Origin: Entomortierella parvispora E1425 | Taxonomy: Eukaryota; Fungi; Mortierellomycota | DNA length: 64,000 nt | Direction of reading: 5' to 3' | Assembly: GCA_020891255.1 (NCBI GenBank) | Contig: BQFW01000002.1 | Span: 2,480,001-2,544,000, forward strand | Part shown: positions 4,565-27,782 of the stretch, piece by piece | Layout: the number at the start of each line of letters is the position of its first letter | How positions within the stretch are numbered: position 1 is the first letter of the stretch | Translations under genes and position numbers: made by a program | The notes under the pieces: model-generated | What the model was told of the DNA's origin: nothing | Databases searched by the model: none | What the model saw: only the letters and a program-made list of their open reading frames with translations

Positions 4565-5839
4565 CTAAGGGAATCTACGACCTTCAAACAACAGAGGCGC
4601 TAGAGCTTTGCCAGTCAGTTCAAAGAATTTGCCCACATTTTTGGCACCTCCTTGACCGTTCTTCTTTATGAAGGCCAAGGCTATCAGAGCTTCTACGTCA
4701 CCTTGATCGCCCGCCTTCTTGAACCATTCTTGAGCCTTGGAATAGTCCTCAGGGACGCCACGCGCATGTTTGTAGCTATTCCCTAGGCACCTCTGCGCTT
4801 GTACATGTCCTTGAAGAGCCGCCTTCTGATACCACTGAAAGGCTAGTGCAAGGTGCTGAGACTCAACATCGCCATTGTCAGCTAGCTCTCCTCTGTCGTA
4901 CTTCTCTGCTAACAAGTATTGGGCTTGTGCGTCTCCACCCTCGGCTTCCTGTAGGAGAGGCCCCAGTTTTTCTAGGGAGCGGGAGTTTTGATTCCCACTG
5001 ATATCGGGAGCACTGCCGACAGTGAGATTCTCCATCGTAGACGCCAACTCGGCGGTCGTGTCCTCATCGGGAGCACTTTGAGGTCCGGTACCAATTGGTG
5101 ACTCTATTATTTCCGAGGGGGCTTTACCGATCATAACCTTGATCGGTAAAACCGCTCCTTGCTGACCTTCCTTCTGAGCCACGTTTGGGAGCTTGGCCCT
5201 AATAGACGAGAATGGATCCCGCATCTGAGTGAGAGATCGGGGCTGAGGTACTGGACGCGTTTTAGGTAAGCTCGCCCTTTGGGTTGTCCCTGCTACTCTA
5301 TCTAAGTTCAGCGCTGCAGAAGAGCCAACACCCACTGGCCGCCCATCCTCCTGCGAAACTTGTCTGGTGTCCTTGCTCGCTCCATTAGAGGACTCATCTA
5401 GGGGAGGAGAGAGAAGAGCACCTTTTTTTTTTCAATAAAACTTGATGACGCGGGCGGGTGTCCACTCGACTCCTGATGAGATCGATCACAAATGTGGTAC
5501 CTGGATCGTCCTGGGTTTCTATCACATCTAAAACGTCATCTGGGAAATACCCGATACAGAGAGGACTGAGTCTAGAAATGACGGGAAGGATTTGCGTAAG
5601 GGGGCTATTGGTAGAGGACAAAAGAGGGCCACATGGTCGCAGCCATTTCCGTACTTAATATTGTTCGAGTCTCGTTTGAAAGCGACTGGCGCGTTGCCTT
5701 TCTTGACCTGTGCCAGCTTTGGAAAGAATTGCTCAATGTCGTCCCAAACGACCACCTTGAGCCCTTGTTGGTGACGAACTGGAACATGCACGCTGTCTGC
5801 TGTACCGGACAGGCGAAAAGATTGAGTCTCTTTCTCCAT
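4565..5839 (-). CDS. Short SLR protein 1: uncharacterised ~85-aa N-terminal domain, low-complexity linker, ~3-4 Sel1 repeats
   Basis: Exons 5839-5655, 5571-5501 and 5397-4565 splice in frame via GT-AG introns: MEKETQSFRL...DSNNIK|LSPLCIGYFPDDVLDV...; C-terminal AQYLLAEKY, GHVQAQRCLGNSYKHARGVPEDYSKAQEWFKKA. Confidence 0.85.
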
Positions 5840-6539
5840 CAGTTCGTTCTTGGGTAGGGGTTACTAATGAAAAAAAAAATGGATCGAAGCTACAGGATGT
5901 GTGTTGTGAAGGTACCATGAAATAAAAGATCATGGGAGATGGGCAATAACAAGGGTGGGGGAAATTGAGGGATGAGAAAAAGTACCAAGAGGGCGACTTT
6001 GCCTTGTGACAAAATCGATCAGCCATTGCTTTGCCAAAATTTTCTTTCTGTAGTCCGTTGATGCATTTTGGCTGTGCGCCCAGAAAAAAACCTGGGGAGT
6101 GCCCACCCTCTGTACTCCTTTTGACCTCAACATGCAAATTGTCGGTAGAATGCGCATGGCAAGCATCCTCCATCAATATTTCACCCACAGAGGTCTCCTT
6201 TGATGTTTTCTTCTCTCTCTCAGTAACACTCTTCCTCATGGATGTCGATCGTAAAGACAACAGTCAATCGGGGATGGTCAGTTGTCCGTTCTCCAGAGCC
6301 GTCAGTGTCTGTTTTGTTTGCCACCCCATGCAAGGCAGCGCCCGTTGTCAGTGGGGCTTTGTGGAACAACGAAGGATGGCAAAGTCGAGGGTGTTTTCGC
6401 CCTGGGAGGTCGACTATTTTTCTTTCGCACGTTGTCTTGCCCGAATCCACCCCGCTTTTTTCCTTCGACAATTTCCTCTCTTCACTGTAGCACCCATAGA
6501 CACCACCGCTCGACCCCTTTCTCCACTGGCGTTGCCGGC

Positions 6540-8558
6540 ATGTCGACTTGTAAATGGGCCACCAATCCAGCTCTTGTCCAAAATATCAACATCAGCGGTC
6601 ATGATGGCGTTATGAGAGGACTCAGGTAAAGAGCAAAAACTCGACTGTTCCGTTCCTTGCAAATTCAGATGAGCTCTAACAGTCTCCTACAAACCCTCCA
6701 GTATTGCCAGTCTATTGGAAAGAGACCCAACTGCCCAAAACGAGACTGGCCGAATGTATGAGCAGGGTGAAGAAGTTCCGCAGAGCGACACCGAGGCTTT
6801 GAAGTGGTACCTGAAGGCCGCCCGCCAAGGAAACACCTCTGCTCAGAACAGTGTGGGCGTCTTTTACCGTGACGGAAGAGGTGTCGAGAGGAACTACTCG
6901 ACCGCGAGAGAGTGGTTTGTCATAGCCGCCTACAAAGGACACGCTGCAGCCCAGTGCAATTTGGGAATGCTCTATCACCTGGACCACGACTATTCAAAGG
7001 CCATAGAGTGGTTTATAGCTGCTGCTGAGCAGTCGTGCGCCGAAGCTCGATTCAATATTGGCTCGATGTATTACGAAGGACACGGAATTCCACGGGACTT
7101 GTCAAAGGCTGTGGAATGGTACTTGAGGGCAGCCCATCAGGGATTCGCAATGGCGCAGTTCTGTATAGGCGCAATGTACGATTCAGGACAGGGCGTTGAT
7201 CAGGATCATGACACAGCTACCATATGGTTTTTAAGAGCTGCCCATCAAGGATGCGCCATTGCCCAGTACAACTTGGGATGTATATATCAACGTGGTAGAG
7301 GTTTAAAACTGAACCTTTCTCAGGCTGTGGAGTGGTTTACAAAGGCGGCAAATCAAGGACTGGCGGAAGCTCAGTACTGCTTGGGACAAATGTACCAAGT
7401 CGGCGAAATTGTTCGTCAGGATATCTTGCTAGCTGTTGCTTGGTATGTGAAGGCCTCCAATCAAGGGGACCCCAATGCTCAGTTCAATCTAGGATTGATA
7501 TATGACAGTGATGATGGCAGCCCTGAGAACTTTCAGAAAGCCACAGAGTGGTTCTCGAAGGCTGCTCACCAAGGGCATGTCGAAGCCCAGTATCACCTTG
7601 GAGTACAATTTCAACATGGAAGAGGGAACCAAAACGATGATCCCAAGGCTCTGGAGTGGTACATGAAAGCAGCAGACCAAGGACACATGCTGTTGCCCAG
7701 AATTGCGTAGGTGACATGTACTTCAATGCCCTTGGAACATCCCAGGATTTACTCAAAGCCTCTGAATGGTATCGCAAGTCAGCCGAACAAGGATATACAC
7801 TTGCGCAGAAAAATATGGGGAATGTCTGTGAGCTTACAAGGGGTGATTCTCAGGGAGATCTGGAGGCCATGGGGTGGTACTTGAAGGCTGCTCATCAAGG
7901 AAATGCCGATGCTCAGTGCAAAATTGGCTTGATATACCATGATGGCAAGAATGTTCCTGAGGACTACCAAGGGGCTATGGAGTGGCTTTTGAAAGCGGCC
8001 AACCAAGGCCATACCGTTGCTCAGTGGAATGTAGGCTTGATGTATGAGCGTGGCCAAGGCATTCCTGAAAATCATGAAGAAGGAATGAGATGGTTTCTGA
8101 AAGCTGCGGAACAAGGAGACGCCAATGCACAGTGCAGCATTGGTCTTAATTACTACATTGGCAAGGGTGTTCCTCAAGATTTCCAAAAGGCCATGGAGTG
8201 GTTTGTCAAGGCAGCTGACCAAGGCGATGCCAATGCTTGGTACAACATCGGTACGATGTATGATACAGGTACGGGTGTTCCTCAGGACTATCAAAAAGCC
8301 ATGATGTCGTATTTGATAGCTGCAGACCAGGGACATGCTGCTGCCCAGTTTGTGGTAGGTGGGATGTACCATGCGGGCGAGGGTGTATCTCAGGACTATG
8401 AGAAAGCGATGGAGTGGTACTTGAAGGCTGCCAATCAAGGAGATGTCACTTCTCGGTGCGTCATTGGTGCGATGTACCGAGACGGCGAGGGTGTTCCTCG
8501 AGACCCCCAAAAGGCCACAGAGTGGTTTAACAAGGCTGCTGACCAAGGGCTGTCGTAG
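6540..8558 (+). pseudogene. Long Sel1-repeat gene A (~17 repeats) with a +2 frameshift at ~7684-7688 (pseudogene or sequencing error)
   Basis: Exon 1 6540-6625 (MSTCKWAT...), intron 6626-6701, then 36-aa repeats AQxxLGxMYxxGxGVxxDxxKAxEWYxKAAxQG. The array continues in another frame after GGACACATGCTGTTGCC, where GGA CAT GCT GTT GCC is expected. Confidence 0.85.
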
Positions 8559-8888
8559 CTCGGCTCGATATACTCAGCTTTGGCACGGGTCTTCTGTGGG
8601 ATAACCATTGTATCGAGATGCGTACAACAATTAACGACGCATTGCGCCTTAGACGTATTGAGCATAGATGCGCAGAAAAACTAGTTCCAGTACAGTAGAT
8701 TTTTTCTCTCGTCTTCGTCCACTCTCTTCATTCCTCATGTCGCTTTACTTCACTTTGCCGGCTGTGGATTTAGAACTCTTTTTTATTTCTATCACCAGTC
8801 ATCCCCTCTACTTGAAGCTATGAAATGGGTCCATGGCTACTTGGGCACCATGCGAGTCCCTCCCTGTGACCATCACTTTTTTTTTTCA

Positions 8889-10180
8889 TCAAAAGAATCG
8901 GTGACCTTGACCTTCAAACAGCAAGGGTAGTAGAGCCTTGCCCGCTAGTTCAACGAACTCTGACATATTTTTCTCACCTCCTTGACCGTTCTTCTTCATG
9001 GATGCTAAGGATACTAGAGAACCCACATCCCCTTGGTCGCCAGCCAGCTTGAACCATTTTTGAGCCTCTTTATAGTCTTCAACAACGCCACGGCCGTGCT
9101 TGTACATAAATCCTAAGTTCCGCTGCGCTTGAACATGACCCTGAACCCCTGCTTTCTTATACCATTCAAAGGCTAGCTGTAGATTCGAATCCTTGTCTAC
9201 GCCATTGCCTGCTAGCTCTCCCTTGTCGTACTTTTCTCCCAGTAAGAACTGAGCATGGGCCACTCCACTCTCAGCATCCTGTCGAAGAGATACTACATTT
9301 TCGTATGAAGCGAAATTGCTGGTGGAAAAAGAGCCATTGAGATTCCCAACAGAGGCCGCTAATGTCGTATCGGACACATATGAGCCGTCGCTCTCAGTGT
9401 AAGATCCGCCCATATTGAGATACGAAGAATCAGACCCCTCTCCAAAGGCCCTTCTAGTTCCCAAGAATGAGTCCAATAAAGAAAAAGCGGGTTGTTGTTC
9501 GCCTTTCAAGTGGATCTCATCTGCAAGTCTGACCGTGGTCGGGGCCGTAGGATCTCTCATATGATTCGGCGAACGAGTTTGAGAGGCCAGACTTGACCAA
9601 GGTGTGCTTGCCTGTGGGATTGTCCATGACAGTCTACCCGTGCCTAGGGCAAGAGATCGGGCAATACCCTCTATCTGCTGAGCTTCTTGTGATACTTGTG
9701 TGGTGCTGGTGCAGGTGCTCACTTCGTCAGAAGACTCGACTACAGGATGCACAGGATGCAGAAAAGGTACCGTTTTAAAAATACTATAGTGTATGTATAG
9801 CTGCTGGTCTCCAGTTCGAATCATTTACAAGGAGATACCTGTTCCGTTCTGGCTCTCTAGTACAACATCTAGGATCTCGTCCGGAAGATACCCGATACAG
9901 AGAGGATTGAGCCTAGAAGAACAGAAAAGACTCTTGTTAGGACCGACTGAAAAACCGAACCGTCTCCACCCTTTTTTTCCTTATGTTGCCTTTCATACTT
10001 GTTATTGTCCGAGTCTCGCTTGTGAGGAACTGCCACCTTGCCTTTCTTGACGTAGGCCAGTCTTCGAAAGACCTGCTCGATGTTGTCCCAAAAGACCACT
10101 TTGGACCCATCAACCTGGTTGACGGCGATTTCCACCACGTCGGTCCTACCAAACACACGAAACGACTGAGTCTCTTCCAT
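8889..10180 (-). CDS. Short SLR protein 2, paralog of 4565-5839
   Basis: Exons 10180-9999, 9912-9839 and 9739-8889 with the same intron positions and phases as its paralog. MEETQSFRVFG...DSDNNK|LNPLCIGYLPDEILDV; C-terminal Sel1 repeats ending GKALLPLLFEG. Confidence 0.85.
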
Positions 10181-10828
10181 CTTTAAACTGCAGTATTTGT
10201 GGAGTAAGGTGAGGATTGATGGCAATACGAGAACTGGAGTGATGATATGGGGCAGGGAGGATTAGAGGGGAAGCGAGGCGATGAGGCAGAGTGGGAAAAA
10301 GGGCAATGAAAAGGAGAGGGTAAAGACATGGTTTTTTCCTTTTCTTTTTTTCCCGTCCTTGCGCCTGTTGCGGTCGGCTGTGCACCTGGAAACCCATGGG
10401 AGAATCGCTCCCTGACCACAGCGCTACAGTTTGACGGTAGAGTGCTACTGGTGAGGAGGAAACAAAGAGGACGCACGTGCACACACAGGCTTCTGTACAG
10501 CCTACATGCATGATGATATTGTTGATCGTTCTCTCAAGACGGCAGTCGACTGGGGGCACCCCCCCCCCATGCAAAGCAGCACTGTCTGCAAGCGGGCGAT
10601 TGTTTTTTCCCCCTGTAAGTTTCCTTGTGGAACCGCTTCAAGGCAGCTGTGCGGACGGGAGGGCAAAGCAGTTGTCTTTGCCCTGGGAGAGAAATTTCTG
10701 CTCTCCTTTCATACATCGACCCCCCCCCCCAAATAAAAAGCTCTCTCCTGCTCTTTCACCCACCATCTCTCACCGCAGAACATACAAACATTCCTTTGCT
10801 TAAATTCCCCTCTATCAAAGATACTGTC

Positions 10829-12996
10829 ATGTCGACTTGTACCATCACTCTTGTCGAAAATATCAACGTCAAGACTAATTGTCATAGTCATAACAACAAC
10901 ATGAGAGGGCAAAGGTAAACAACAAAGAGCTCTACAGAAGGCTGCCCCGAAATTTCAGATCCATACTAACGATCTGTTACCTCTTTGTAAATAAAAGATA
11001 CCCAACCTCCCAGAACAACGTCGGTCGAATGTATGAGAATGGAGAGGGTGTCCCACAAAACTATCCCAAGGACTTGGAGTGGTGCCTTGAGGCCGCTCGT
11101 CATGGAAACGTCGCTGCTCAGAACATTGTCGGCGTCTTGTACCGTGACGGTAAAGGTGTCGAGAGGAACTACTCCACTGCCAGAGAGTGGTTTGTCAAGG
11201 CCGCCTACCAAGGGCATTCTGAAGCCCAGTGCAACTTGGGAAGGATGTATTACTTGGACGGCGACTACTCCAAAGCGGTAGAATGGTTTATTGCAGCATC
11301 CAAATCCAAGGATCCGTACGCTGAGGCTCTATTCAATATTGGCTCGATGTATTGTGAAGGCCGCGGTTATCAGCAAAACTTTTCCAAGGCGATGAATTGG
11401 TACAAGAAGGCTGCCGATCTGGGATATGCAAAGGCACAGCTTATTATAGGTGTGATGTACGACAGAGGCGAAGGCGTTGATCAGGATCACATCGAAGCTG
11501 CCGATTGGTATTCCTGCGCTGCAATTCAGGGGTGCGCCATGGCTCAATATAACCTGGGCTTTCTATATCGATATGGCAGAGGCGTTGATCAGAACAATTC
11601 CAAGGCCCTGGAATTATTCACTGGCGCAGCCAAACAAGGGCTCGTAGAGGCCCAGTACTACTTGGGAGTAATGTACCAAAACGGTGACACTGTTACTCGT
11701 AATATCTCTAGGGCCATGTCGTGGTATTTGAAGGCTGCCGATCAGGGAAGTTCTGACGCCAAGTTCAGCTTAGGCATGATACACGAGACTGGCGATGGTG
11801 ATGCCGAGGATTACCAGATGGCCAAGAAGTGGTACTTGGAGGCCGCCCACCTAGGACATGTTGCTGCTCAATATGAGATCGGCACCATATACTTCAGGGG
11901 CAAGGGAGTTGCCCAGAATCATCAAATGGCCATGGAGTGGTATAAGAAGGCGGCTGGCCAAGGGCACGCTGCCGCTCAGTATTGTGTTGGTGACATGTAC
12001 TCCAATGGTCATGGGGTGTCCAAAAATACATTCGAGGCTGCCGAATGGTATCTTATGTCGGCCGAACAAGGATATGCACCTGCGCAGAGAACTATGGGCG
12101 ACCTGTTTCTTTTTGACAAGGACGATCATAACGATAGCTCAGAAGCCATGGGGTGGTATTTGAAGGCTGCTAGCCAAGGGGATGCCTATGCCCAATGCAA
12201 ACTTGGGCTATTATTCTATGACGGCAAGGGAGTTCCTAAGGACTACCGGGAAGCCAAAGAGTGGTTTTTTAAGGCAGCCAACCAAGGGCATGCCGATGCC
12301 CTGTGGAATATAGGTCAGATGTGCGAGAACGGTCAGGGTGTTGTGGAAGACCATGAATCAGCGATACAATGGTTTTTGAAAGCCGCTGAACATGGATGTG
12401 CCGATGCTCAGTGTAGAATAGGCGATATGTACTGCACTGGAGAGGGCGTTCCTCAAGACTACCGGAAGGCCATGGAGTGGTTTGTCAGGGCTGCTGACCA
12501 AGGGCAAACGGATGCCATGTGCAACATTGGTGCAATGTATTTTGCTGGCAACGGTGTTCTTCAGGACTATCAAAAATCTATGAAGTCGTATTTGAAAGCT
12601 GCAGACAAAGGACACGCCGCGGCCCAGTTTGTGGTAGGTGGGATGTACCATCACGGCAGTGGCGTTCCTAAGGACTACAAGAAAGCCATGGAATGGTATA
12701 TTAAGGCTGCCAAGCAAGGAGATATCAGTTCTCAGTACACCATAGGCGTGATGTGTCAAGAAGGCAACGGTGTCCCTCAAGACGACCAGAAGGCAGCAGA
12801 ATGTTTTCAACGGGCTGCCAGTCAAGGACACGCTGCTGCCCAGTGGAGCTTAGGTTTAATGTACAAGCGTGGTCAGGGCGTTTCTAGGGACATCAAAATA
12901 GCCAAAGCCTGGATTAAGAAGGCGGCCGACCAAGGACACGATGCTGCTCGGGCCTACATATCTGGATCCAATACCGCGACGGGGGCTTCTACTTGA
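10829..12996 (+). CDS. Long Sel1-repeat protein B (~18 repeats)
   Basis: Exon 1 10829-10914 (MSTCTITL...), intron 10915-10997 with TACTAAC branch point, then an uninterrupted Sel1 array to TGA at 12996. Confidence 0.9.
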
Positions 12997-13140
12997 CTGC
13001 CAACAAATGATGGGCTCGGAGGTCATAAGGTTATATCGAGAGCAAAGGCGAATGAACTCTAGGACAAATAATAATAAAGAAACACGCGACGTAGCTAAAC
13101 TCTTACACTTGGAAAGAGTGGCCCTCTCATATACTTCATA

Positions 13141-13782
13141 AAGCGCCAACTCTAGTCAATGAGATTGGGACAATACTGAATTTATGATAGGCAGTCTCGG
13201 GTGATGAGCTCGATGCTTTCTTAACATAGGAGCCTGTCGCCAGAGATCCTGGAAAAGATGGCCAGATCATTGTTCAAAGGGCTATCTTAGTCTGGATCGT
13301 TTCTCGGACCACGATCGCAACGAGTCTCTGCCATCACCATTTATATTGGTGTTGGAGATGGGCATTATCAACTGTGGAAGGGACAGAGTCATGGATGTGG
13401 AAATCTACAGAGAACTTGATCAGACAGACAAGTGATGGCAATCTTTGAGTTTGAGTGTGTGGGTGGAGCATTGGTGAAGACAAGTTTCTAAAAGAGGCGA
13501 GATCTGGCCAAGGACCTTTCCAGGAACAAGGAAAGGAGGCCCATTGTCACCAAGCTTGTCAAGATTCCTGAGTATCGGTCTTTGATGTTTTGTTGTTCGT
13601 GCCTCTTTCGCGTGAAAGAGGAGGGTCGATCGGTCATCTGCAGTGAGTGCCGCAAGAGCCGCGACTGGGACCATGTTTCTGCTACGAATCTGTCGCATGC
13701 GGCCCTACACTTTCTTCGTAAACGAGAGTGGCCTGCTCCTCTTGCGGACGTTTCCAACCACTCCCACAACAACGATGCTTGA
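13141..13782 (+). mobile_element. Decayed Fanzor/TnpB-like RuvC nuclease C-terminal remnant
   Basis: One frame with 6 internal stops carries, in order: IYIGVGDGHYQLWKG (13339-13383), IPEYRS (RuvC-II-like E at 13570), CCSC (13591) and CSEC (13639) zinc finger, RDWDHVSATNL (RuvC-III-like RDxD..N, 13660-13692), and WPAPL. Confidence 0.62.
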
Positions 13783-14998
13783 AAAATGACTTCAACTGGC
13801 TCTTGTACTTGGACTGTTAGGAACAAGCGCCTGCAGCTGTACAGTACATGCCCCCGTCCCCCGTTCCCCCCCCCCTTTTTTTTTGATGTCTGTCAATCTC
13901 AAGCTTGGAAGCATCCTTTCATCACTGATGAAGCAACCACCTTCATTCACATTGAGCGACGAGGATCGAGCCTTGTTCAACGGAGCCTCAAAGTGGTTCA
14001 AATCTGGGGTGAGAATGAGATACAGAGTCAGCAGTACTGTACTTCGCTTCTCCTGAACTGCTTTACCTTCCCCTGCCCGTGCGCGTTCTCAACAGCCCTT
14101 CCCTTTGTCCACTCCTGAGTCCTAACAATCAAAAAAGCACCCCTGCATCCCGGTCTTTTTCTATATCTCCATTTTCTTTGGCTTTCCTCCCATTTTTTCT
14201 ATTCGCCTGCCCTTGCTTCGTGTCTGCCCTTGCTCCGTCCCTACCCTCCTCCGTCCCTACCCTTGCTCCATCCCTGCCCTGCCCTTGCTCCATCTCTGCC
14301 CTTGCTGTCCCCAGCTCTCCATTGCCCCTTCTTTCCCTGCCCCACCTTTTTTCCATTAGTATTGTGGTGTAACTAAAGGGTTGGGGATCTGATGGAGCTC
14401 AAGGGGGAAAGGGAGGTTGGTGCAGGATCTCACTGTCTACTGTGTGAACAAAGTACCAGTGAAGATCTCAATCCGGGTGGAGACTCAACTTGCAGGGAAG
14501 CGAACATGATCGATAGAATGGAAGTGGTTCAATTATATCAGCACAGGCAATCGGAATTGTAGGCGTCGACGACCTGCTGAAGGGCAACTGTCAAGAGGGA
14601 TAACTGTTCATAGGAAGTGTGTTCAACACCAATGCAATGCAAAGTGTAAGAAGGAAGGAGGCGACCCGGAGCAAGCAATTACTAGAGGTTGCCAAGGGAG
14701 TTCTATTCTTTTGTTCCAGGATGTGAGATGTAAATCCTCTACACGACAGTGTTGTTTCCCATGCCACCCCTTACATTGGTATCCCCTTGGTCTTTCAGGT
14801 ATCCCACTATACATCTCTCTCCTTAGTGTGGTGTGGTCTTCATCTCAATATCTCCCTGTCTCCTTCGACCCCTGTGTATGTACTGATTTATATCGATAAG
14901 GATTAAATACTCTGCCACACCACGGGCACATTCTGTCCTTGAACCTAATGCCTCAAGGTAACAAAGAGAAAGCGCGCTTAGGCTCCCCGACTTTTCTG

Positions 14999-15122: not shown

Positions 15123-15320
15123 ATGAAATTCCAATATTTACTCATTGCCTGTGCCCTGATGAGTTGGGCGGCAGCCACTCCTCTCCCTGCAGATGCCCCG
15201 GCTCCCCCAGGCGGCGCCGGAAACTCTTTGGACAACTTGAGTGGCGATTTAGGTTCTCTGACTGGAGGAGAAAAAAAAGGAGGCGTTTTGGGTGGCGTTT
15301 TGATTGCCGGCTTCCTTTAG
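15123..15320 (+). CDS. Small secreted Gly-rich protein (65 aa)
   Basis: Signal-peptide-like MKFQYLLIACALMSWAAA|TPLP, then a Pro/Gly-rich mature part; upstream TATA box. Confidence 0.7.
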   Translation: MKFQYLLIACALMSWAAATPLPADAPAPPGGAGNSLDNLSGDLGSLTGGEKKGGVLGGVLIAGFL

Positions 15321-16185: not shown

Positions 16186-16220
<35 letters not shown>

Positions 16221-16397
16221 CCTCCCCTGCAATTCGGCGCTGTCTGTAAGCTTCTTTCCCCCTTGAAAGTTTCCTTGTGGAACGTATCAAGGCAGCTATA
16301 TCGACGGCAAGGCAAAGCAGAGCTTTGGTCTTCGCCTTTTTTGAATTGGGAGGAGAGATTTCTGCTCTCCGTTGACAGCTCGATCAACGATACTGTC

Positions 16398-16598
16398 ATG
16401 TCGACCTGTACTGTCGCCAATGGAACTTGGATTTGATGTATGTGTAGAGTCAGGGTGTAATGAATGTGTAGAGTCAGGGTGTAATGAAAGGACAGCAAAT
16501 TCGCGGAGGAGTGGATTAAGAGGGCGGCTGACCAAGGATACGATGCTGCTCGGTCCGACGTAGCCGGGTCCATCTCCTCAACAGGGGCCTCCACTTGA
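16398..16598 (+). pseudogene. Internally deleted copy of Sel1 gene B
   Basis: Starts GATACTGTC-ATGTCGACCTGTACT (MSTCTVA), as in B and E. Ends WIKRAADQGYDAARSDVAGSISSTGAST*, matching B's end WIKKAADQGHDAARAYISGSNTATGAST*. Only ~200 bp lie between start and stop, with stops and frameshifts. Confidence 0.85.
16440..16487 (+). repeat. Exact 2 x 24-bp tandem duplication
   Basis: ATGTGTAGAGTCAGGGTGTAATGA twice. Confidence 0.95.
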
Positions 16599-17644
16599 CT
16601 TCCAAAAGAACAAAGTGCTAAAAGTAAAGGATTTCAAATTATATCGAGGGCTGGCTTTTCCTGACAAAGAAAAGAAAAAAACTCGGAACAATCCCTCCCA
16701 TCTACGCTCTTACTGCTAGGAAGGAGTGTACTGTTGATGTGTCAAGACTTCACGTAGATCTGATAGAACTGAAAGCGGATTTAGTGCAGTTGAGCAGAAA
16801 CGGTTCTTTAGTTCAATTGAGAGGGGAAGTTTTTTCTTCTCCTTTCCTTCGATGGAGGACGCCAGTTCTTGTTAATGACATTGAGGCATTACTGAATGCA
16901 GAATTGACACGATATTCCATGATCGGTAGTAAGTGAGTGCAATCATTAATCGTGACCGGCCCTATCGTTTGGAATTGCTTGTGTTTATCGCAGCGCTAAA
17001 AAGTTCTAGACAAATCCTTGCTTCCTTTGTTGGTCGCAGTTGGTTCCGCTTCAGCGACCACGTTGTTCGCTAAGGAATGTGATCGCAACAGAAGGCTGAT
17101 GGAAGCGAATAGATGCTGCAGACGAGGGACACGAGAAACAGCCGCAAGGCGAAGTAGGCTGAGATTGACTGCATGAAAGAATGAACACGAAGGGGGGGGT
17201 AGCGAGTTTTGACCTGTCGTCGATTTTTGTCTGCTCTCAAAGTGGGGTCACAACCCGAGTCAAGCAAGGCGCCTATCAGTTTTGGATTGAAAAATGATTG
17301 CGCTGTGCTGTGTCTTCTCATTTACATCCGGCACCGGGCCACACCCTAGAGCTGTTGCCCTCTAAACCAGAGTTCAACACCAACACTACTGGAAAGTCGT
17401 TGACAATCAGACTTGGATGCGTGTCTGTGCGAAGGTGATGACTGGTCTCTGCTCCCCTGATTCCTTTTTTTTTTTGTGGAACGGATGGCAAAGTAAAATG
17501 TTTTTGTCCTTCTTTTGGGAGACAGACCATGCACATTTTCGCTCTTCCACCTTTTCTTCTCCTCCCCCACCTTTCCACTCCCACGGTCCTCTCTTCGTAA
17601 AAATACATATCATCATTTCACCCTCTTTTATCGGTGGTACAGCC

Positions 17645-20594
17645 ATGACAACTTGCGCCGAAGTCATTCTACCCGAGGCGGAAGGCATTAGCCTCAAGAG
17701 CCTTGCCCACAGGATCATAGATCAAAACCTTCAAGACAAGAAAGATCAATGCCACATTGGATTGAAACAAAATTTGAGTGAACTCGAGTAAGAAAAAATC
17801 GAACGGCGACCATGTCAATGCATCATAGATCCCTTCCTCAACCCTTGGTATTTTTGGTGTGGTTTGGCCCGTTAGCTTAGACGGTTTAGATCGAGGAGAT
17901 CCAATCGCTCAATACAAAGCTGGTCGAATGTACGAGCGTGGAAAAGACATACCTCAAAGCTACACTGTTGCTATGAAGTGGTACCTGAAGGCTGCCCACC
18001 AAGGCAACGCATCAGCCCAGAACAGTGTCGGCGTCTTTTACCGTGACGGCAAGGGCGTGGAGAGGAACTACTCCACTGCCAGAGAGTGGTTTTTGAGGGC
18101 CTCTGATCAAGGACACGCTGCAGCCCAGTGTAACTTGGGGCGGATTTATCGCCATGACAACGACCATTTCAAAGCTTGGGAGTGGTTTCAAGAAGCAGCT
18201 AGCCAGTCGTACGCTGAAGCTCGATTCAATATTGGCACCATGTATTACGAAGGACGTGGGATTCCACAGGACTTGACAAAGGCCGTGGAATGGTACTTGC
18301 GGGCAGCCCATCAGGGATACGCAATAGCTCAGTTCAGCTTAGGTGCGATATACGAAGCTGAGAGTACTCTTCAAGACTTCCATTCAGCTGGAGATTGGTA
18401 TTCGAAGGCAGCCAAACAAGGTTTCGCCAAAGCTCAGTATAACTTGGGCGTTCTATATCGATATGGTAGAGGTGTTGATCAGAACGCTTACACGGCCCTG
18501 AGTTGGTTCAGGAAGGCAGCCAATGAAGGACTCGCAGAGGCCCAGTGCTGCCTGGGACAAATGTACCTAGAGGGTGACACTGTTCGTCAGAATATCTTGG
18601 AAGCTGTTGCTTGGTATGTGAAGGCAGCTGATCAGGGAGATCCCGATGCCCAGTTCAGCCTAGGCTTGATACACAGTGATGACAACAGCAGTCCAAAGTA
18701 CGAGAATGCTATGGAGTGGTTTCAAAAGGCTGCCAACCAAGGACATACCGCTGCCCAGTTTAAAATCGGTTCGTTATACCACGTTGGCATGGGTGTTGAC
18801 CAAGATCACCAAGTGGCCATGGAGTGGTATAAGAAGGCAGCCGACCAAGGACATGCCGCTGCCCAGTTTGAAATCGGCTCGTTGCACCACGCTGGCATGG
18901 GCGTTGACCAAGATCACCAAGTGGCCATGGAGTGGTATAAGAAGGCTGCTGATCAAGGATACGATGCTGCCCAATGTGCACTTGACTCAATGAACCTCAC
19001 TGGCAAGGATCTTCTCGATGGCGCAGATGTTTCCGTTGACAGCGACGTCCTCGATAGCAAGGATGTTCCCAATGACAGCGATGTCCTCGATAGCAAGGAT
19101 GTTCCCGTTAACAGTGATGTCCTCGATGGCAAGGATGCTTCTGTTGAGAAGGACGCTTCCAGTGGCAAGATTGATCCCAATGACAATATTGCTCCTGTGG
19201 ACGAGGATGTTCCCAATGGCAACATTGATCCCAATGACGATATTGCTCCCGTTGACGAGGGTGTTTCTAATGGCAAGATTGCTCCCGACGATAAGAATGT
19301 TCCTGACGATAACAAGGTTCCTGACGATAACAAGGCTCCAAAAGATCAAGGACACTCTGATGCCCAATTTACCCTGGGTACGAAGTACCGTGACGGAGAT
19401 GGAGTTTCCCGGGACATTAAGAAAGCGATGGAGCTGTACTCCTTGGCTGCCGATCAAGGACATGCCGATGCCCAGTACCACTTGGGAATGATGTACCTCT
19501 CTAACACAGGCGTTTCTACGGACTACGAACAGGCCAAGAAGTGGCTGTTGAAGGCTGCAACCCAAGGACACCCCGATGCTCAGTGTAGAATTGGGTTAAT
19601 GTATCGAACTGCCAAGGGTGTTACTCAAGATTACAACAAGGCCATAGAGTGGTATGAGAAGGCAGCCGACCAAGGAGTTGCCGATGCTCAGTTCAACCTT
19701 GGATGGATGTACCGAACTGGCAAGGGTGTTCCTGAGGATCATAAAATGGCCATGGAGTGGTATTTAAAAGCCGCAGGCAAAGGAAATATCGCTGCTCAAT
19801 GCGACATTGGCCTAATGTACCGCACTAAGCAAGGTTTTTTTACTCAGGACTTCGAAAAGGCAATGAGTTGGTACATGAGAGCTGCCAACCAAGGCGACGC
19901 CTCAGCTCAGTTTACAGTGGCCACGATGTACCATGCTGGCGAAGGTGTTTCTTCTAAGGACTACCAGAAAGCTGTAGAGTGGTATTCGCGGGCTGCCGAT
20001 CAAAAATATCAAGCTTCCCTATACGCTCTAGGCGTGATGTACCATGATGGAGACGGTGTTACTAGGGAGTATCCGAAGGCCATGGATTGGTTAAGGAAGG
20101 CTGCGGATCTAGGTCACTCGGCCGCCCAGTTCAAGCTAGGTTTGATGTACTACGACAGCAGGGGTGTTGATCGAGACTTAGAGAAGGCACTTGTATGGTT
20201 CCAGAAGGCTGAGAAGCAGAACTTCGCCGATGCCCAGAGCAAAATAGCCGTGATGTACCAAAACGGCAAGGGTGTTCCAAACAAGGACCGCAAAAAAGCG
20301 GAAGAATTGCATATGAAGGCGGCGAAACAGGGCAATCAAATTTCTCAGTACAGCGTCGGTATGATGTATCATGATGGCTCAGGCGTCCCCCGGGACTATC
20401 AGCAAGCGATAGTTTGGTTGAAGAAGGCGGCAGATCAAGGACATGTCGTGGCTCAGCTTAAATTGGGTTTGATGTACATGAATGCCACGGGTGTCACAAG
20501 GGACTCTCAGAAGGCCAAGGAGTGGCTGAAGAAGTCTGCCAGTCAAGGAAATACCGATGCACAGAAATACTTGGATAGCATGGCTAAGGAGTAA
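17645..20594 (+). CDS. Long two-lobed Sel1-repeat protein D (~10 + ~11-12 repeats, acidic hexapeptide linker)
   Basis: Exon 1 17645-17787 (MTTCAEVI...), phase-2 intron to a probable acceptor at 17875, then a 900-aa ORF of Sel1 repeats interrupted by an Asp-rich linker. Confidence 0.9.
19008..19349 (+). repeat. Coding 18-bp minisatellite, 19 hexapeptide units
   Basis: DLLDGA DVSVDS DVLDSK DVPNDS DVLDSK DVPVNS DVLDGK DASVEK DASSGK IDPNDN IAPVDE DVPNGN IDPNDD IAPVDE GVSNGK IAPDDK NVPDDN KVPDDN KAPKDQ. Confidence 0.9.
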
Positions 20595-21060
20595 GGATAG
20601 TATAAGCAGTGGGCCCGGTCGTAAATAAAAGGATCTCAGATTACATGTTGACCAGTTGTACTCTTCGCGAACATCTCCCGATATATTTGAAAACCTCTAA
20701 GGACTTTGTTCATCCGATGGGGAATCGTGATTGTTTAGCTATAGAATGCCTACTTGATCTAACGACGACGGAGCAACTCCCATAGAAACATGCACAGCTT
20801 GTGGATGATCGGCTATAACCAGCAAACACCCCGAGACTCTTCTGGACGACCACAGTTTATTATACAATGGTCGAATTCTAGTGTAGAATAAACAATTAAA
20901 CAGACAAAAACGCAAATCTACCTCTCAGACGCCTGTGCGCTTACTCTTGGGAAAGGCAGCACCCATAGTGCGCCCAGGTTCCAGACTTCATGCATATATA
21001 ATGCAGCTTGCCTCCTTCCTTCATAAAACTTTAGCCCCATACCATGATGCTGGTGCAGTA

Positions 21061-21113
21061 CAGTGTAAGTCGCACATTAGACCGAATGTCGGTCCATTGT
21101 GCGACTTGCACTG
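21061..21113. mobile_element. 53-bp foldback element (MITE-like) with Tc1/mariner/pogo-type ends
   Basis: TA|CAGTGTAAGTCGCACATTAGACCGA-ATG-TCGGTCCATTGTGCGACTTGCACTG|TA: 25-bp inverted repeats (3 mismatches), a 3-nt spacer and flanking TA. Confidence 0.6.
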
Positions 21114-22121
21114 TACTGAACTTGGAGCCGACACGACATTCCATGATATCCAGTGCCTCTGTGCAGTGGTTGACCTCGACTGGCTACATGAATGTTTATC
21201 CAAATGGGATTGCTTTACATGAGCGTGTCACTCCTTGTTTTTCGCTGCCCGACAAACCTTACTGATACCAATTTTTTCCTCTGTTGTCTTTGTTTCGCCA
21301 AGGAAGGTGATCGAATCATCGACTTTAGAACCAACAGAGGGCCGATGACAGGAAAAAAAAAGCCAAAGCAGCGGCAAGGCGAAGCGGGCTGTGTGTGTGA
21401 TCGACAATAGCCTACCATGGACACAAAGGGGCAGCGCGGGTCGCTTTTGACTGTGGTCTCAACTCGCTCGAAGATTTTCACTCTGGGCCACAACAGCACC
21501 CCTCGATTTTCGTACCCTGCACCCAACAGGATAAAATGAATGGAGTATCTTTTCTTCTTTGTTCTTAGGTCATGCCCAAGAGCAGTTTCCCCCAACACCA
21601 ACGCCACTGGAATATCGAGAGCATCCTTGAACCACAAATGACAATCAGATCTCTGTGAAAATAACTTCAGCGCTTCAGTGCGAGTTAATTTTTTTTTTTT
21701 TTTTTTTTATTGTGTAGAATGGATGTAATCAGGGAGAAGCCGATACGATGAAAAAAACTTGATGCATCGTCAACTGAACCGTCAACTCCAAAACAGCGAC
21801 GTCGCTAGGAGTGCTTCGCCGCAAATCAGCCCATTTCGTCCCAGACACGGAAAAGGTTTTTTTTTTAGTGTAACTGGGGGCGAGCAAGGGGCAGAGGCAA
21901 AGGTAAACTCCAGGCACAGTTTTCGGTAGATATGTTGCTTGTTCCTTTTCGTTCTTTTCCTTCCTTCATCACTGTCAGCTCCTATCCTTCTCTCCCCCTC
22001 AATTTTTGTCCAGTGATCTTTCACCCCATTGTCTACCAGTCTTGCAAGTACCCAAGGTGTGAGTACTCCTCAACTCCATATCACTGTTGTGACAACAAGA
22101 TGAAAGGTTGTAGATATTGAC

Positions 22122-24997
22122 ATGGCTTCTGCTTACTGCCGTATTAGGATCAACATGGCACCTTTAGCACATGATGCTCTGGAGCTTTTGGAGAAGGCGA
22201 GATCCGAAATCAAAGCTGCCCAAACCGCCAGTGGTTCTCAACGACTTTTGCACTATCGGGCTGCAAAAAAAGTCCTTGTTAGCATCGGCACAAAGGTGGT
22301 TACCGCGCCTTTGAGTGGGATGGTCATTGCCTACGAGGACCTTGCCAAGATATTTGACCACTCGGGAGATCAGAAGAGGGCCACAAAGTGCAGAAAGAGA
22401 GCAGATGCTCTAAGGTAGGCTATCTTTCTGTGTTTCGCCAACTTTGACTTGGAGGTGCATGCAGAAGGCGCTCTAACAGTACAACGGTAACGTGTTAGGC
22501 CTGCAGCCGATAAGAATACGAAGACCCTTGCAGCCACCAACTCTTCATCGCTTATCACGCCTCCAAGCAGCGCCGTGCCCACTGTGATTGGAACAACTAC
22601 TTCCACCACCAGTGCTGTGAACACCTCTCCAGCCTCTCGAGAGCTAACTCCCTCTCCCGTCTCTGTCTCGGCGGCCGCTGCCCTAGTGTCACCCCCGTCG
22701 TTCTTTAGCAAGGATATTAAAACGAAGCCCTATGTCTGTTCGTTGCCAGGACAAAACGAGCCGTTTGAAACCACCCGGCAACTCGCCTTTTGTCTCGCAC
22801 TTTTACGACCTTCAATTCAAGAGCACGACCTCTCTCCAGAGAATCTCGAATGGCGACGGAAAACCCTAGAGAACCAGGAGGAGAAGGCCCGCTTGGAGAA
22901 CTTGTCTGAACAACTAATCAAGGCATTCGCTAAGGATGTCATGAAACGTGATACTATGGTCATCGAGGTTATCCAACTGGCGCCTGTGCTCAGTAGCGAC
23001 GATTCTCGATTTCTTATCAAGACCTTTATCGATGCTGTACATCAATCACATATGCTCGATTTTCATTCATTGGAAGGATTGGCCATGGCGATTCAAGGAG
23101 CTGCCTCAGAATCATGCGACTCGGATGACCTTGTGAGAGTTCTTGGATCCCTTCACCGAAAACTTCAGTCCACTCATTCACAGAGCGATCGGTCTCGATA
23201 TCGTCTGCTGGTCACAATTTCCCATGTTTTGGATGGGATGGTGGATGCTCGTATTGGTGATGTCCAAGTTGATCTCCACGGGCCATTGACAGAGCTTCTT
23301 CGAGAGTCGGAGAAAGAGTCAGGCGACAATCCTTACCTCGCTTACCAAGCTGCGTATGCTACTCAGGCATTGCTGAATGTGTCTGATAATGAGAACATAT
23401 GGAGTGCAGGGTTCAAACGAGGGTGGCTAGTACTGAAAGGTGCTGCAGGATGCGCCGAGATGCCTGATCTGACGCAGGTAAAAGACTATCTTGACGGGTT
23501 GGAAACGCTTTATAAAGCTTTAACAGGGGGCGCTAGACTACTGAAGGATGCCGTGGATGCGATTAAGAACAACGAACGTCCCACATTCACCGTGAAGGAG
23601 GGTCTCAAGTTCAAGAGGGCCTGGTATTGGGCTGTCCGCACGGCAGAATCGTATCTTGAGATTGGAAAACTTGTAGAGTTCAAGGAACTGGTCATGACCG
23701 CGCCGTGCCGAGACCAACTCATGTTCCAGTGGGGAATCTGCCAATTGCTTAGACAGTTTGCAGCTGACACCGAATGGGATCCAGAGGCGCAACAGGACGC
23801 AATTGAATTTCTAAGAGCACTCTACAAGGACAAGGCAATTTGGGATCTCCAAGAAAAGGTCGATGAAGTTATCTTTGATGCCATTACCAGTATGGCACAA
23901 GATAATGAGGGTATGAAAATATCCATGCATCACTAGTTCATGTATACCAACCAAAGCCGGTGAAGGGTACAGCACGCTAATGCCCTAGCCCCCCCCCCCC
24001 CCCCCTTTTTTTTTTCGCCTTTCGATCTTCGTTAGCATCCAAGTCCTTCCTGGAGGAGATGAAAAAGCGGAACCCGAACCTCGAACCAACCGCCAATCTT
24101 AAACTATCGCCCTGGAAGAATATTCTACCTGTGGAACCAGCTGAAGCTTCTGCCACAAAGTCTTCTTTACTAAAGGATGTCCAAGCTCGATCTAGTCGGC
24201 ATGCCAACCTGGAGAATATACAACACCGCCTTTCACAGTCCAGTTTCGACAGTGATCACTCAACACCCAAGAGCTCCCAGGAAACAGATATTGTTAACCC
24301 TGGAACGCCGAGAAGCGAGTTGAGCTTTGTCAATCTGGCCCTTGAGGGAGCGCCGGAGAATCAAGAGAAAGAGAGGCAAGATATGAACAGGCAGATGTGC
24401 CATACTACCAAGGATGTCCCCGATGACAAAGATGTCTCCGCTGGCAATGAAGTTCCTGACGACAAGGGTGTTCCCCTATGCAAGAATACCTCCAATGAAA
24501 AGGATACTACCAAAGATCACCAGACGTCTACCGACGATGCTAACAAAAAAGAGGCTGCAAAGCAGTTTGCCGAGGGACTAAAGTTTCATGCTGGCTATGG
24601 TGTTCAAAAGAACTGTGTGATAGCCAGGAACAGGTATCTGAAAGCGAACAAGCTAGGACATGTTGATGCCCCGTGTGTTCTTGGCACGATGTACCGCGAT
24701 GGCGATGGTTTTCAGAAGGACCTCAGAAAGGCGGTGGATTGGTACTCCATAGCTGCCCAGCGAGGAAACGCTCTTGCTTACTACAACTTAGGCATGATGT
24801 ACCATAATGGAGTCGACATTTTCAAGGACTATCCAAAGGTCATGGGATGGTTCAAGAAGACTGCAGATTTAAGCCACTCTGACGACAATGGTGCTTCCCA
24901 AAACCACCAGCTTGCAATGGCGTTGTGGAAGAAAGCCGCAGATCTAGGAAATGCCGAGGCGAAGAAACGACTTGATGCGCTGCCGATAGCAGTCTAA
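22122..24997 (+). CDS. Chimeric protein: helical ARM-like N-terminal region, hexapeptide linker and ~4 Sel1 repeats
   Basis: Exons 22122(or 22155)-22414, 22499-23910 and 24036-24997 splice in frame. Helical region (TRQLAFCLALL, YLAYQAAYATQALLNV, FQWGICQLL) followed by KDVPDD-type units and LGTMYRDGDG Sel1 repeats. Confidence 0.8.
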
Positions 24998-25460
24998 ACA
25001 ATGAGTGTAACTGTCAATAAAAATATATCCCAGGCTACATTCTGGATAGGTATGTCTTGCAAAGCCTCACAGTGTCCATAGATCCTAGAGGAGATCCCTT
25101 TCTCTCGAATGTAATTGCAGATCGGCAACTCAGAATTGCATCCGAACCACTATCGCTCTCCGATTGCAGCCAAGTAAACGCAAGTCTTTGAGCGACGCCC
25201 GACGGTTGAGCGAAGACGGGCCCGTGCGAGTTTGTTCCCCTGATTTTTTTTTCTTTTTTTTTGTGAAACGACAAGAACCACAAGACAGCATGCCATTTGA
25301 AACATTTTTTCGGCCATGCCCTGGCAGCTCATGTTCGCTCTTTTTATTTCCACACTCTTTTTTTTTTTTTTTTTCCTGCTCTCTTCCCAAATTTTCAATT
25401 CCTTTTCACAAAACATATACACCTTTGGTTGACTCTCTTTCCTCTGTCCACGATACTGTC

Positions 25461-27782
25461 ATGTCGACATGCACTGTCACCAGTCCGACGCTGGTCGAGA
25501 ATAGCAACATCAGTGGTATAATCAGAGGTCATGGTGACATTGTGGGCGGACTCAAGTAAGCAAACACACGGTCAAAAGCCACTCTATTTGTCTCTTCAGT
25601 CCTGCAACATCCCTTTGAACAGTCTGTTTTCCCTCTTGTCATGAATTGGTACTCCAGTATAGTCAGTCTAGCTGAAAGAGACCCGGCCGCCCAAAACGAC
25701 ATTGGCCGAACGTATGAGAAGGGCACAGGAGTTCCACAAAGCGACATCGAGGCTATCAAGTGGTACCTGAAGGCCGCCCGCCAAGGCAACACCTCCGCTC
25801 AGAACAGCGTGGGGATCTTTTACCGTGACGGAAGAGGTGTCGAGAGAAACTACTCCACTGCAAGAGAATGGTTTGTCATAGCCGCCTACAAAGGACACGC
25901 TGCGGCCCAGTGCAATCTGGGGATGCTCTATCGCCTGGACGGCGACTATTCCAAGGCCAAGGAATGGTTTGTCGCCTCCTCCAGGCAGTCGTACGCTGAG
26001 GCTCAGTTCAATATCGGCACCATGTATTACAAAGGGTACGGGGTCCCCCAAAACTTTTTCAAAGCCATGGACTGGTATCTGAGGGCAGCCACGCGGGGGT
26101 TTCCCATGGCGCAATTCAGTATAGGCGCCATGTACGATGCAGGAGAAGGCTGCGAACAGGACCATCCTACAGCGGCGGATTGCTATCGAAGGGCGGCCGA
26201 TCGAAGATGCACCATGGCCATGTATAATTTGGGCTTTTTGTATCGACATGGCAAAGGTGTCAAGAGGAGCCATGCCAAGGCCCTGGGGTGGTTCAACAAG
26301 GCAGCAGAGTTAGACCTTCCCGAGGCTCAGTATTATGTAGGAAGGATGCACCACATTGGCGACATTGCCTCTCAGGATATCACCAAAGCCATAGAGTGGT
26401 ATCTCAAGGCGGCCAATCAAAGGCACCCCGCCGCCCAGTTCGCCCTAGGCGTCATGTACAATGATGGCGATGGCCTTCCGCAGGATTATCAGAAAGCGGC
26501 CGAGTGGTTTTTAAAATCAGCCGAGCAAGGAGTCGCGGCTGCCCAGCGCCGCGTGGGGGATATATACCTGTTGGGCAAAGGCGTTCTTCAAGATTACCAA
26601 AAGGCGATGGAGTGGTACTTGAAGGCGGCTGAACAAGGCAACCTCGACTCTCTGCGAGCCATTGGGACGATATACAAAGATGGAAAAGGTGTTCCCCAGG
26701 ACCACCAGAAGGCTAAAGAGTGGTTCTCAAGGGCCGCTGATCAGGAACACACTGCTTCTCTAGTTGCCGAGAATGCTGGGAGCGTAACGGACAGCATCTA
26801 CGAGGATGTCCCTCAGGACAACCAGAAACCCACGAAGCGTCAGTCAAGAGCAACCGATCAGGAAAACTCTGACATTCAGCATGTCAATTCAGAACAGCCT
26901 GCTGCTCACTCCAGCCTAGGTGAGATGGACTGTGATGCAATGAACATAGCTCAGGGCTCCCATGAACATGTGGAAGAGATTCTCGTCGCCGCTGACCAAG
27001 GGTTCGCAGATGCTCAGTACTGCATGGCAAAGATGTACCGATCCGGCGAAGGGGTTCCTCAGGACCATAAAATGGCCTTGGACTGGTGTATAAAGGCCGC
27101 CAACCAAGGACACGCTGGCGCCCAGTACACCGCAGGCATGATGTACAAGCGAGGTCAAGGGGCTATTCAGAACTATCAGAGTGCTGCCGAATGGTTGAAG
27201 AAAGCGGCGAGCCAAGACGACGCTGAAGCGCAATTCGAATTGGGCAAGATCTACCGGACTGGAAAGGGGGTGGACAAGGACTCTCGAAAAGCCATGGACT
27301 GGTTTTTCATGGCCGCCGATCAAGGACACACTGCGGCCCAATACACCATTGGTATGATGTACCTCAACGGCGAGGGCGTTACCCGAAGCTGTCGGCAAGC
27401 TATAGGATGGTATTTGAAGGCAGCTGGAGAGGGACACGCTGCTGCCCAGTTCAACGTGGGTCGGATGTACCTTGAAGGAGAGGGAGTTTTCCAGGACTAT
27501 CGTCTTGCGGAGGAGTGGTTCTTGAAAGCTGCCGATCAAGGACAAGTGGACGCCCAATACAACATAGGACTGATATACCAGGAGGGCCAAAAAGTGGCGC
27601 AAGATTTTGAGAAAGCAATGGAGTGGCTGTTGAAGGCTGCTGACCAAGGACATGCCGAGGCTATGTATAAGATATCGGGCATGTATCAGAGTGGTCAAGG
27701 TGTTCCCCAGGACTCGAGGAAGGGCAGAGAATGGTTCGCAAAGTTTGTCAATCAAAAACGACAGGCCGATGCGCAAAAATGA
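25461..27782 (+). CDS. Long Sel1-repeat protein E (~10 + ~8 repeats, degenerate central hinge)
   Basis: Exon 1 25461-25555 (MSTCTVTS...), phase-2 intron 25556-25657, Sel1 array to the stop at 27782. Confidence 0.9.

Follow-up and report, generated by a model that had tools for sequence, protein, structure and literature searches.

The genome of the fungus Entomortierella parvispora E1425 contains, between its BRCA2 and ATG13 genes, a dense group of genes built from Sel1-like repeats (SLRs), and the question that this locus raises is what such a group of genes does and how it came into being. The window that we analysed, i. e. the whole stretch of 64,000 nucleotides, covers positions 2,480,001-2,544,000 of contig 2 in an assembly of 38.9 Mb and 20 contigs. 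The genome was assembled from Nanopore reads, polished with Illumina data and annotated with AUGUSTUS under the guidance of cDNA, and the sequenced line is a cured derivative of strain E1425, which is the natural host of Mycoavidus sp. B2-EB (PMC8759367). Eight SLR loci lie between the two flanking genes: two short genes (S1 and S2), four long genes (L1-L4), one relic and one gene that fuses an ARM_5 domain to Sel1 repeats. Our work suggests that the island is probably an old tandem cluster, specific to this lineage, of genes for soluble SLR scaffolds, in which some copies are decaying and the short genes would encode oligomerising adaptors.

The Sel1 content of the island is unambiguous. Pfam detected Sel1 (PF08238) above the gathering cut-off at all eight loci, and the long genes reached 510-608 bits in 16-19 stretches each; here as in all other searches, spliced genes were examined exon by exon, and L1, the gene with the frameshift, was always treated as two separate halves. 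A hidden Markov model (HMM) built from the Sel1 repeats of the window recognized about 80 repeat units, all of them between 4.6 and 27.8 kb, and gave no Sel1 match of weight in the rest of the window. The Pfam results and this repeat map agree with the first-pass annotation, made from the letters of the sequence, which had counted two short, four long, one chimeric and one collapsed SLR locus and had listed duplication, frameshift, deletion, domain fusion and transposon remnants: all of these were found. The positions that define the SLR structure are conserved (Ala2, Gly7, Tyr10, Gly13/15, Ala23, Trp26, Ala30-31 and Gly34, with an entropy of 0-1 bit in 73 repeats). In the complete genome, there are about 626 candidate repeats and more than 30 long open reading frames (ORFs) with Sel1 repeats, and the island is one of several Sel1 concentrations in E. 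parvispora. Two further Sel1 ORFs of 610 and 403 amino acids are located on the minus strand about 10 kb past the end of the window (contig 2:2554419-2557411); thus, the SLR genes of the neighbourhood exceed the BRCA2-ATG13 interval alone.

The products of the short and long genes are likely to be soluble, since their highest mean Kyte-Doolittle value over 19 residues is 0.91 or less, with no window above 1.0, and since their N-termini are polar and show, as judged by hydropathy only, no signal-peptide-like start. For these genes, the absence of signal peptides and membrane segments that had been proposed as a difference from SEL1L/Hrd3 is therefore borne out by the hydropathy maxima. The sole hydrophobic stretch among the island products is found in exon 1 of the fusion gene (22270-22330), with a 19-residue mean of 1.68. 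According to Pfam, the ORFs of the island contain no NACHT, NB-ARC, other NTPase or effector domain and no protein kinase domain, and a PPxY or LPxY motif is absent from the island products.

The four long genes have the same architecture: a short exon 1 that opens with Met-Ser/Thr-Thr-Cys, a phase-2 GT donor, a canonical GT-AG intron of 76-102 nucleotides at an equivalent position, and one long repeat exon. In L3, an Asp/Pro-rich linker separates the blocks of 10 and 11 repeats, and in L4 a disordered linker separates those of 10 and 7. The start Met-Ser-Thr-Cys and the about ten bases preceding it are kept even in the relic (6530-6550, 10819-10840, 16388-16410 and 25451-25472), and this may reflect a translation-start context or an N-terminal cysteine for acylation. 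Collinearity among L1-L4 extends over approximately the first 980 bp, with 67-75% nucleotide identity, each of the repeats 1-8 has its positional counterpart in all four genes, and collinear paralogy in the island as a whole is at 65-75%. Comparison of the window with itself revealed that a head-to-head cassette of about 4.3 kb has been duplicated, S1 and L1 versus S2 and L2, with 72% nucleotide identity. The proteins of L1 and L4 share 97% identity in repeat 2 (6841-6945 and 25797-25901), as compared to 63% for the whole block, which could be due to gene conversion or to strong constraint on this repeat.

A maximum-likelihood tree of the N-terminal block, for which 10 own rows were combined with 22 foreign ones selected among 2672 hits, places L1-L4 in one clade (support 100/98) that is sister to three genes of E. 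parvispora located on contigs 3, 5 and 12 (100/100). The rows from Mortierella, Linnemannia and Actinomortierella as well as the bacterial and metagenomic rows all fall outside the island and its sister clade, and the foreign proteins share at most 50% identity with the N-terminal block and align at internal positions. Based on this clade, on the sisters in the same genome and on the distance of the foreign matches, the long genes have arisen by local duplication within the E. parvispora lineage. The comparison with bacterial SLR proteins that had been asked for thus leaves the island genes in an E. parvispora clade, and a recent transfer from bacteria was rejected in view of the spliceosomal introns, the genome-typical GC content and the fungal clade. 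The proposal of birth and death by local duplication agrees with the single clade, the frameshift in one gene, the relic and the fusion. The present layout results from the following events: an ancestral long SLR gene was duplicated in place to give L1-L4, the cassette of a short and a long gene was duplicated once to give S1-L1 and S2-L2, and later one copy lost its array, another acquired a frameshift, and a gene of the NOD-like receptor (NLR) family lost its NACHT and sensor parts and now ends in a Sel1 tail.

How fast does the cluster evolve? Fast-evolving fungal receptor repeats are usually credited with two signatures of concerted evolution, highly similar internal repeats and a few hypervariable positions, and the island is without both. 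Pairwise estimates by the method of Nei and Gojobori (NG86) for all pairs of long genes and for S1/S2 gave synonymous divergences (dS) of 0.9-1.8 and dN/dS ratios (omega) of 0.21-0.33. If the codons are grouped by their position in the repeat, omega is 0.08-0.21 for the core and 0.11-0.65 for the exposed positions in helix A, the loop and helix B; no class is consistently above 1, and the lone exception is a noisy value of 1.2 for 32 codons. The repeats within one island gene are on average 43% identical, and repeats 9 and 10 of L3, with 89% amino acid identity, are the only recent-looking internal duplicate of the island. In contrast, the repeats of a Sel1 gene at 84 kb of contig 2 (82.5-86.5 kb, L019) have a mean identity of 0.68 with units that are up to 99% identical in DNA. 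In other Sel1 genes of E. parvispora (L019, L020 and L021), units reach 99-100% identity in DNA, and the genome thus has both stable and actively homogenised Sel1 arrays. The resemblance to rapidly evolving receptor clusters that had been noticed at first sight is not supported, given the old divergence, the low omega, the positional orthology of repeats 1-8, the low identity within genes and the lack of NTPase or effector domains. The surviving island genes have evolved under purifying selection, and their N-terminal block of eight repeats is conserved.

Two loci bear witness of decay. In L1, an insertion of 2 bp at 7689/7690 relative to L2 and L3 leads to a stop codon at 7708-7710, so that translation would end after nine repeats; the eight further repeats are stop-free in the new frame. 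The frameshift is probably real because it lies outside of a homopolymer and because the assembly was polished with Illumina data. It is also recent, since the downstream eight repeats are stop-free and evolve like the remainder (omega 0.23-0.27 for both halves of L1 compared with L2). In the relic, the 5' region of an L2-like gene (10562-10709 corresponds to 16220-16373, 71% identity) is followed by a duplicated 23-bp motif and then by the last half repeat with the stop codon (12888-13003 corresponds to 16490-16605, 78%); the whole array in between has been deleted. Moreover, two transposon fragments lie among the loci. The dispersed repeat of about 600 bp gives a match to the Cas12f1-like TNB Zn-ribbon (PF07282) with E=0.049, i. 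e. below the threshold, and a longer copy of it on contig 14 (L018:1060-3105) adjoins an ORF of 681 amino acids without a Pfam family. With only a sub-threshold Zn-ribbon and an ORF outside Pfam to go by, an identity as Fanzor is neither confirmed nor excluded. One of the sites that match the second, high-copy fragment sits among RVT_1, integrase and chromo ORFs.

These observations raise the possibility that the island is mostly a graveyard of genes that are out of use and whose open frames are left from past selection. Damage or rearrangement affects three of the eight loci, transposon fragments are interspersed, and word searches returned no annotated proteins for L2-L4. However, L2, L3, L4, S1 and S2 have kept long open frames and intact splice sites after a dS of about 1, which neutral decay would not allow. 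In addition, S1 and S2 are present in the cDNA-guided annotation, and the stop-free half of L1 beyond the frameshift indicates a recent lesion. We thus consider a mere graveyard very improbable.

The short genes provide the second element of our proposal, the adaptors. S1 and S2 consist of three exons each, their start codons are located about 650-700 bp from those of L1 and L2, head to head, and the products are 95-100% identical to the annotated proteins EMPS_01636 and EMPS_01638. Each protein consists of an N-terminal domain (the N-domain) that is predicted to resemble the N-terminal domain (NTD) of TDP-43, a disordered linker of about 190 residues, and two to three Sel1 repeats. The N-domain, about 85 residues encoded by the first two exons, which are conserved between both genes, occurs in 16 copies in the E. 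parvispora genome; downstream of these copies, we found leucine-rich repeats (LRRs) of the ribonuclease inhibitor (RNI) type at five loci, Sel1 arrays at two loci, or no known domain. The two Sel1 arrays, of 14 and 7 repeats, are joined to the N-domain by direct fusion. A profile search in 1.84 billion proteins identified 443 clusters at E<=0.001, with matches that nearly always start at residue 1 of the protein, and all ten members whose taxonomy was looked up belong to the Mortierellaceae. Among 60 scanned members, nine contain LRR_6 and three contain Sel1, and none has a Walker A motif; a separate scan of six longer members revealed NACHT in one of them. In about two thirds of the family, an unnamed middle domain with the motifs PRLFIVLP, FRLxFLCECGEHT and HLAKHEGY follows the TDP-43-like head and precedes the LRR part (see the table for examples). 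This domain belongs to no Pfam family, lacks a Walker A motif and gave a blank result in the ESM Atlas. The N-domain is a new finding: a family that is invisible to Pfam and is combined with Sel1, LRR or NACHT parts.

Three lines of evidence support the relationship of the N-domain to the TDP-43 NTD. First, the AlphaFold2 model, calculated from an alignment of 63 rows, has a predicted local distance difference test (pLDDT) score of 91-97 for residues 1-80, and in a Foldseek search the top nine rows were all TDP-43 NTD structures. Second, VIA-align superposed the model on TDP-43 NTDs with Z scores of 9.5, 8.9 and 8.3 and a root-mean-square deviation (rmsd) of about 2 A over 68-70 residues; the best superposition on a crystal structure had Z 9.5 and rmsd 1.9 A for 69 of 79 residues. 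Other ubiquitin-like folds reached Z scores of at most 6.1, about 3 units below the TDP-43 NTD. Finally, the lead in the ESM Atlas was again the TDP-43 NTD, with TM scores of 0.61-0.77. The TDP-43 NTD is known to assemble into head-to-tail chains (PMC5830921, PMC5491494).

Our proposal that the island encodes scaffolds and adaptors can thus be worded as follows: The long proteins would form extended alpha-solenoids and serve as platforms for the binding of other proteins. The short ones would join a few Sel1 repeats via the long linker to an ubiquitin-like domain of the TDP-43-NTD/DIX type and, because the TDP-43 NTD fold self-associates head to tail, may oligomerise and thereby gather the partners bound to SLRs into larger assemblies. 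If the N-domain indeed polymerises, it would be a fungal counterpart to the oligomerising adaptor domains in animal signalling. Several points weigh against this proposal. (i) Neither the N-domain exons nor the annotated S1 and S2 proteins have a Pfam match at E values up to 5-10, including TDP-43_N (PF18694), and a profile of the 16 N-domain exons produced only chance matches with the sequences of the PDB. The fold of the N-domain, although we assign it with high confidence, has the predicted structure as its sole basis, and self-association is assumed from this fold. (ii) The functional coupling between short and long genes would follow from their adjacency and from the fused relatives. (iii) At a dS close to 1, episodic positive selection would largely escape an analysis by pairwise omega. 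(iv) Repeat-rich proteins saturated the word searches with L4, in which even the paralogues in the window were missed, so that the absence of relatives is claimed only above about 65% identity and weaker orthologues could be hidden.

Could the SLR proteins simply be housekeeping adaptors, for instance activators of chitin synthase of the Skt5/Chs4 type or adaptors of ubiquitin ligases, with the cluster providing dosage or sub-functionalised copies? The purifying selection, the strongly conserved N-terminal block and the soluble products would fit. However, housekeeping adaptors are conserved across fungi, whereas no close orthologue is present outside E. parvispora above about 65% identity; the PPxY/LPxY motif is missing from the island products, and the repeats are of the canonical bacterial and arbuscular mycorrhizal type, with 17-21 units. 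A housekeeping role seems improbable to us.

The fusion gene provides a link to immune-type proteins. Its ARM_5 domain is recognized by Pfam with E=3.5e-55, and a GT-AG intron connects the ARM_5 exon in frame with the ORF of exon 3, which encodes an NLR-type post-ARM linker, an acidic linker and four Sel1 repeats. At least 90 sequences of the genome match the ARM_5 exon, and many of these are the N-terminal ends of open frames with a length of about 1800 residues; sampled paralogues are ARM_5-NACHT-WD40 (1949 amino acids) and ARM_5-NACHT(-HEAT) proteins. The ARM_5 head and the linker are 52-62% identical to those of ARM_5-NACHT proteins, and the region 24032-24394, i. e. the first 120 residues of the ORF, is homologous to the linker of the paralogues and ends about 40 residues before NACHT. 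A tblastn search with the NACHT regions of the paralogues found only the pre-NACHT linker and no NACHT relic in the window. The idea that the Sel1 tail was borrowed from a neighbour was rejected: the best genomic match has 39-54% identity, and the island genes are not at the top. Because the tail repeats lack a close donor anywhere in the genome, the fusion is old. A long SLR gene with an ARM_5 gene about 1.5 kb downstream is found at two unlinked loci, in the window (17645-24997) and at 452-457 kb of contig 12 (L005:1560-4520 and L005:6021-7340), although the ARM_5 copies of the two loci share just 31% identity; by a rough estimate, chance alone would produce about 0.3 such pairs per genome.

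Is the island then an array of receptors for non-self or for the endosymbiont, as had been inferred in the first-pass annotation? In such a system, SLR arrays would serve as ligand sensors and the N-domain and the ARM_5 head as signalling adaptors of a network that resembles innate immunity and operates without an NTPase of its own. This idea has some footing in two architectural links: the ARM_5-NACHT-WD40/HEAT NLRs of E. parvispora, a species with 26 N-NACHT NLRs (PMC12258605), have the ARM_5 head as their N-terminal domain, and the N-domain likewise stands at the front of RNI-type LRR proteins and of one NACHT protein. Moreover, prokaryotic relatives couple Sel1 arrays to caspase, TIR or trypsin domains, pseudogenes occur within the expansion, which is specific to the lineage, and Sel1 families of arbuscular mycorrhizal fungi (AMF) have been proposed to act in the perception of the environment (PMC8647823). 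The strain's natural association with Mycoavidus, which agrees with the expectation of a Burkholderiaceae-related endobacterium (PMC8759367), adds to this footing. The evolutionary tests, however, do not favour the idea: unlike other Sel1 genes of the genome, the island shows no sign of diversifying selection or homogenisation of repeats, and the duplicates are old. The long genes are without effector or NTPase domains, the fusion gene has lost NACHT and could equally be a decaying NLR, and nothing ties the island genes to bacteria. Thus, the immune-type link stands as far as the domains shared with NLR, LRR and NACHT proteins are concerned but is not matched by an NTPase or effector domain in the island itself, and we regard a sensing array as unlikely. 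It is tempting to go one step further and to speculate that the Mortierellaceae possess a so far undescribed layer of NTPase-independent signalling reminiscent of innate immunity, in which a polymerising TDP-43-NTD-like head (at least 443 clusters) is combined with interchangeable Sel1 or RNI-type LRR sensors; the island would then be a battery of sensors and adaptors, linked to the NLRs by the ARM_5-Sel1 fusion, that monitors endobacteria or non-self. This remains a long shot. Since the endobacterium of the host strain is both curable and culturable, the idea of sensing can be directly tested in this strain.

The coordinates of all features are compiled in the table. Of the flanking genes, ATG13 probably includes as its disordered C-terminal part an ORF of 625 amino acids (28128-30005) that has no Pfam match. 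Scans with Rfam and for tRNAs gave no matches in positions 1-32 kb of the window. An ORF of 65 codons (15123-15320), flanked by the transposon fragments on one side and by the relic on the other, begins like a signal peptide and ends in a tail rich in Gly; it may be a gene for a small secreted peptide or may occur by chance. A palindrome of about 50 bp (21057-21117) matches both strands of at least six other loci with 94-98% identity and may be a miniature inverted-repeat element.

Table 1. Features of the SLR island, its flanks and related loci. Positions refer to the window except where another locus is named.
Feature	Position	Strand	Remarks
BRCA2 gene, large exon (left flank)	46..3675	+	PF09103 BRCA-2_OB1 E=8e-35, PF09169, PF00634
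S1, short SLR gene, EMPS_01636	4565..5839	-	2-3 Sel1 repeats; N-domain exons near 5839-5651 and 5573-5502
L1, long SLR gene	6540..8558	+	9 + 8 = 17 repeats; intron 6626-6701
S2, short SLR gene, EMPS_01638	8889..10180	-	2-3 Sel1 repeats; architecture as S1; head-to-head with L2
L2, long SLR gene	10829..12996	+	18 repeats; intron 10915-10997; Sel1 E=2e-158
Dispersed repeat copy of ~600 bp, transposon remnant	13196..13796		five copies on other contigs, 81-84% identity
Fragment of high-copy element, ~100 bp	14421..14518		>35 matches at 77-79% identity, Ty3/gypsy-rich regions
Collapsed SLR relic	16220..16605	+	L2-like 5' region, start codon and 12 codons, then stop
L3, long SLR gene	17645..20594	+	10 + 11 = 21 repeats; intron 17788-17875; Sel1 E=2e-189
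ARM_5-Sel1 fusion gene	22122..24997	+	exon 1 22122-22418; ARM_5 exon ~22494-23910; intron 23911-24035; exon 3 24036-24997
L4, long SLR gene	25461..27782	+	10 + 7 = 17 repeats; intron 25556-25657; Sel1 E=1e-157
ATG13 (right flank)	28128..32084	-	HORMA exon 31653-32084, PF10033 E=8.6e-18
Unnamed middle domain, examples	L010:3137-6085, L011:2491-5559, L007:3793-5955		proteins P0243, P0156, P0144

A comparison with known systems helps to place the cluster of putative scaffolds and adaptors. SEL1L/Hrd3 likewise uses a Sel1 solenoid as a protein-binding adaptor. It resides in the lumen of the endoplasmic reticulum and has a signal peptide and a membrane anchor, whereas by hydropathy the short and long gene products have neither. 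The repeat consensus of the bacterial SLR proteins, such as Hcp of Helicobacter and LpnE and EnhC of Legionella, is of the same canonical 36-residue type and very similar, and the N-terminal block of the island genes is 40-50% identical to bacterial and metagenomic proteins over 330 residues; the bacterial proteins are, however, secreted or periplasmic, whereas spliceosomal introns, the GC content of the host and a fungal clade characterize the island genes. With the ARM_5-NACHT-WD40/HEAT NLRs of E. parvispora, only the fusion gene has something in common, the ARM_5 head and the following linker, and in this gene the NACHT NTPase and the sensor of the WD40/HEAT type have given way to four Sel1 repeats. 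For the N-domain of S1 and S2, the predicted fold is like that of the TDP-43 NTD (PF18694) and of the polymerising ubiquitin-like domains of the DIX type, but the sequence identity to the TDP-43 NTD is only 16-21%, the partners are Sel1, LRR or NACHT rather than RNA-recognition motifs, and polymerisation of the N-domain is presumed from its fold. A close parallel is found in the Glomeromycotina: The Sel1 families of Rhizophagus irregularis and Paraglomus are, like the island, lineage-specific expansions in Mucoromycota that are sometimes arranged in tandem arrays, and the AMF genes are thought to act in signalling or in the perception of the environment (PMC8647823, PMC9453076). The AMF genomes contain 1000-3400 Sel1 motifs that are often joined to kinases, as compared to about 626 candidate repeats in E. 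parvispora and an island without kinases; kinase-Sel1 proteins are present in other Mortierellaceae. Lineage-specific tandem expansions of Sel1 genes are thus already known from arbuscular mycorrhizal fungi, and the island is another case: such expansions are a known and unexplained hallmark of the Mucoromycota, of which the BRCA2-ATG13 interval provides a compact and well-resolved example in the Mortierellomycotina.

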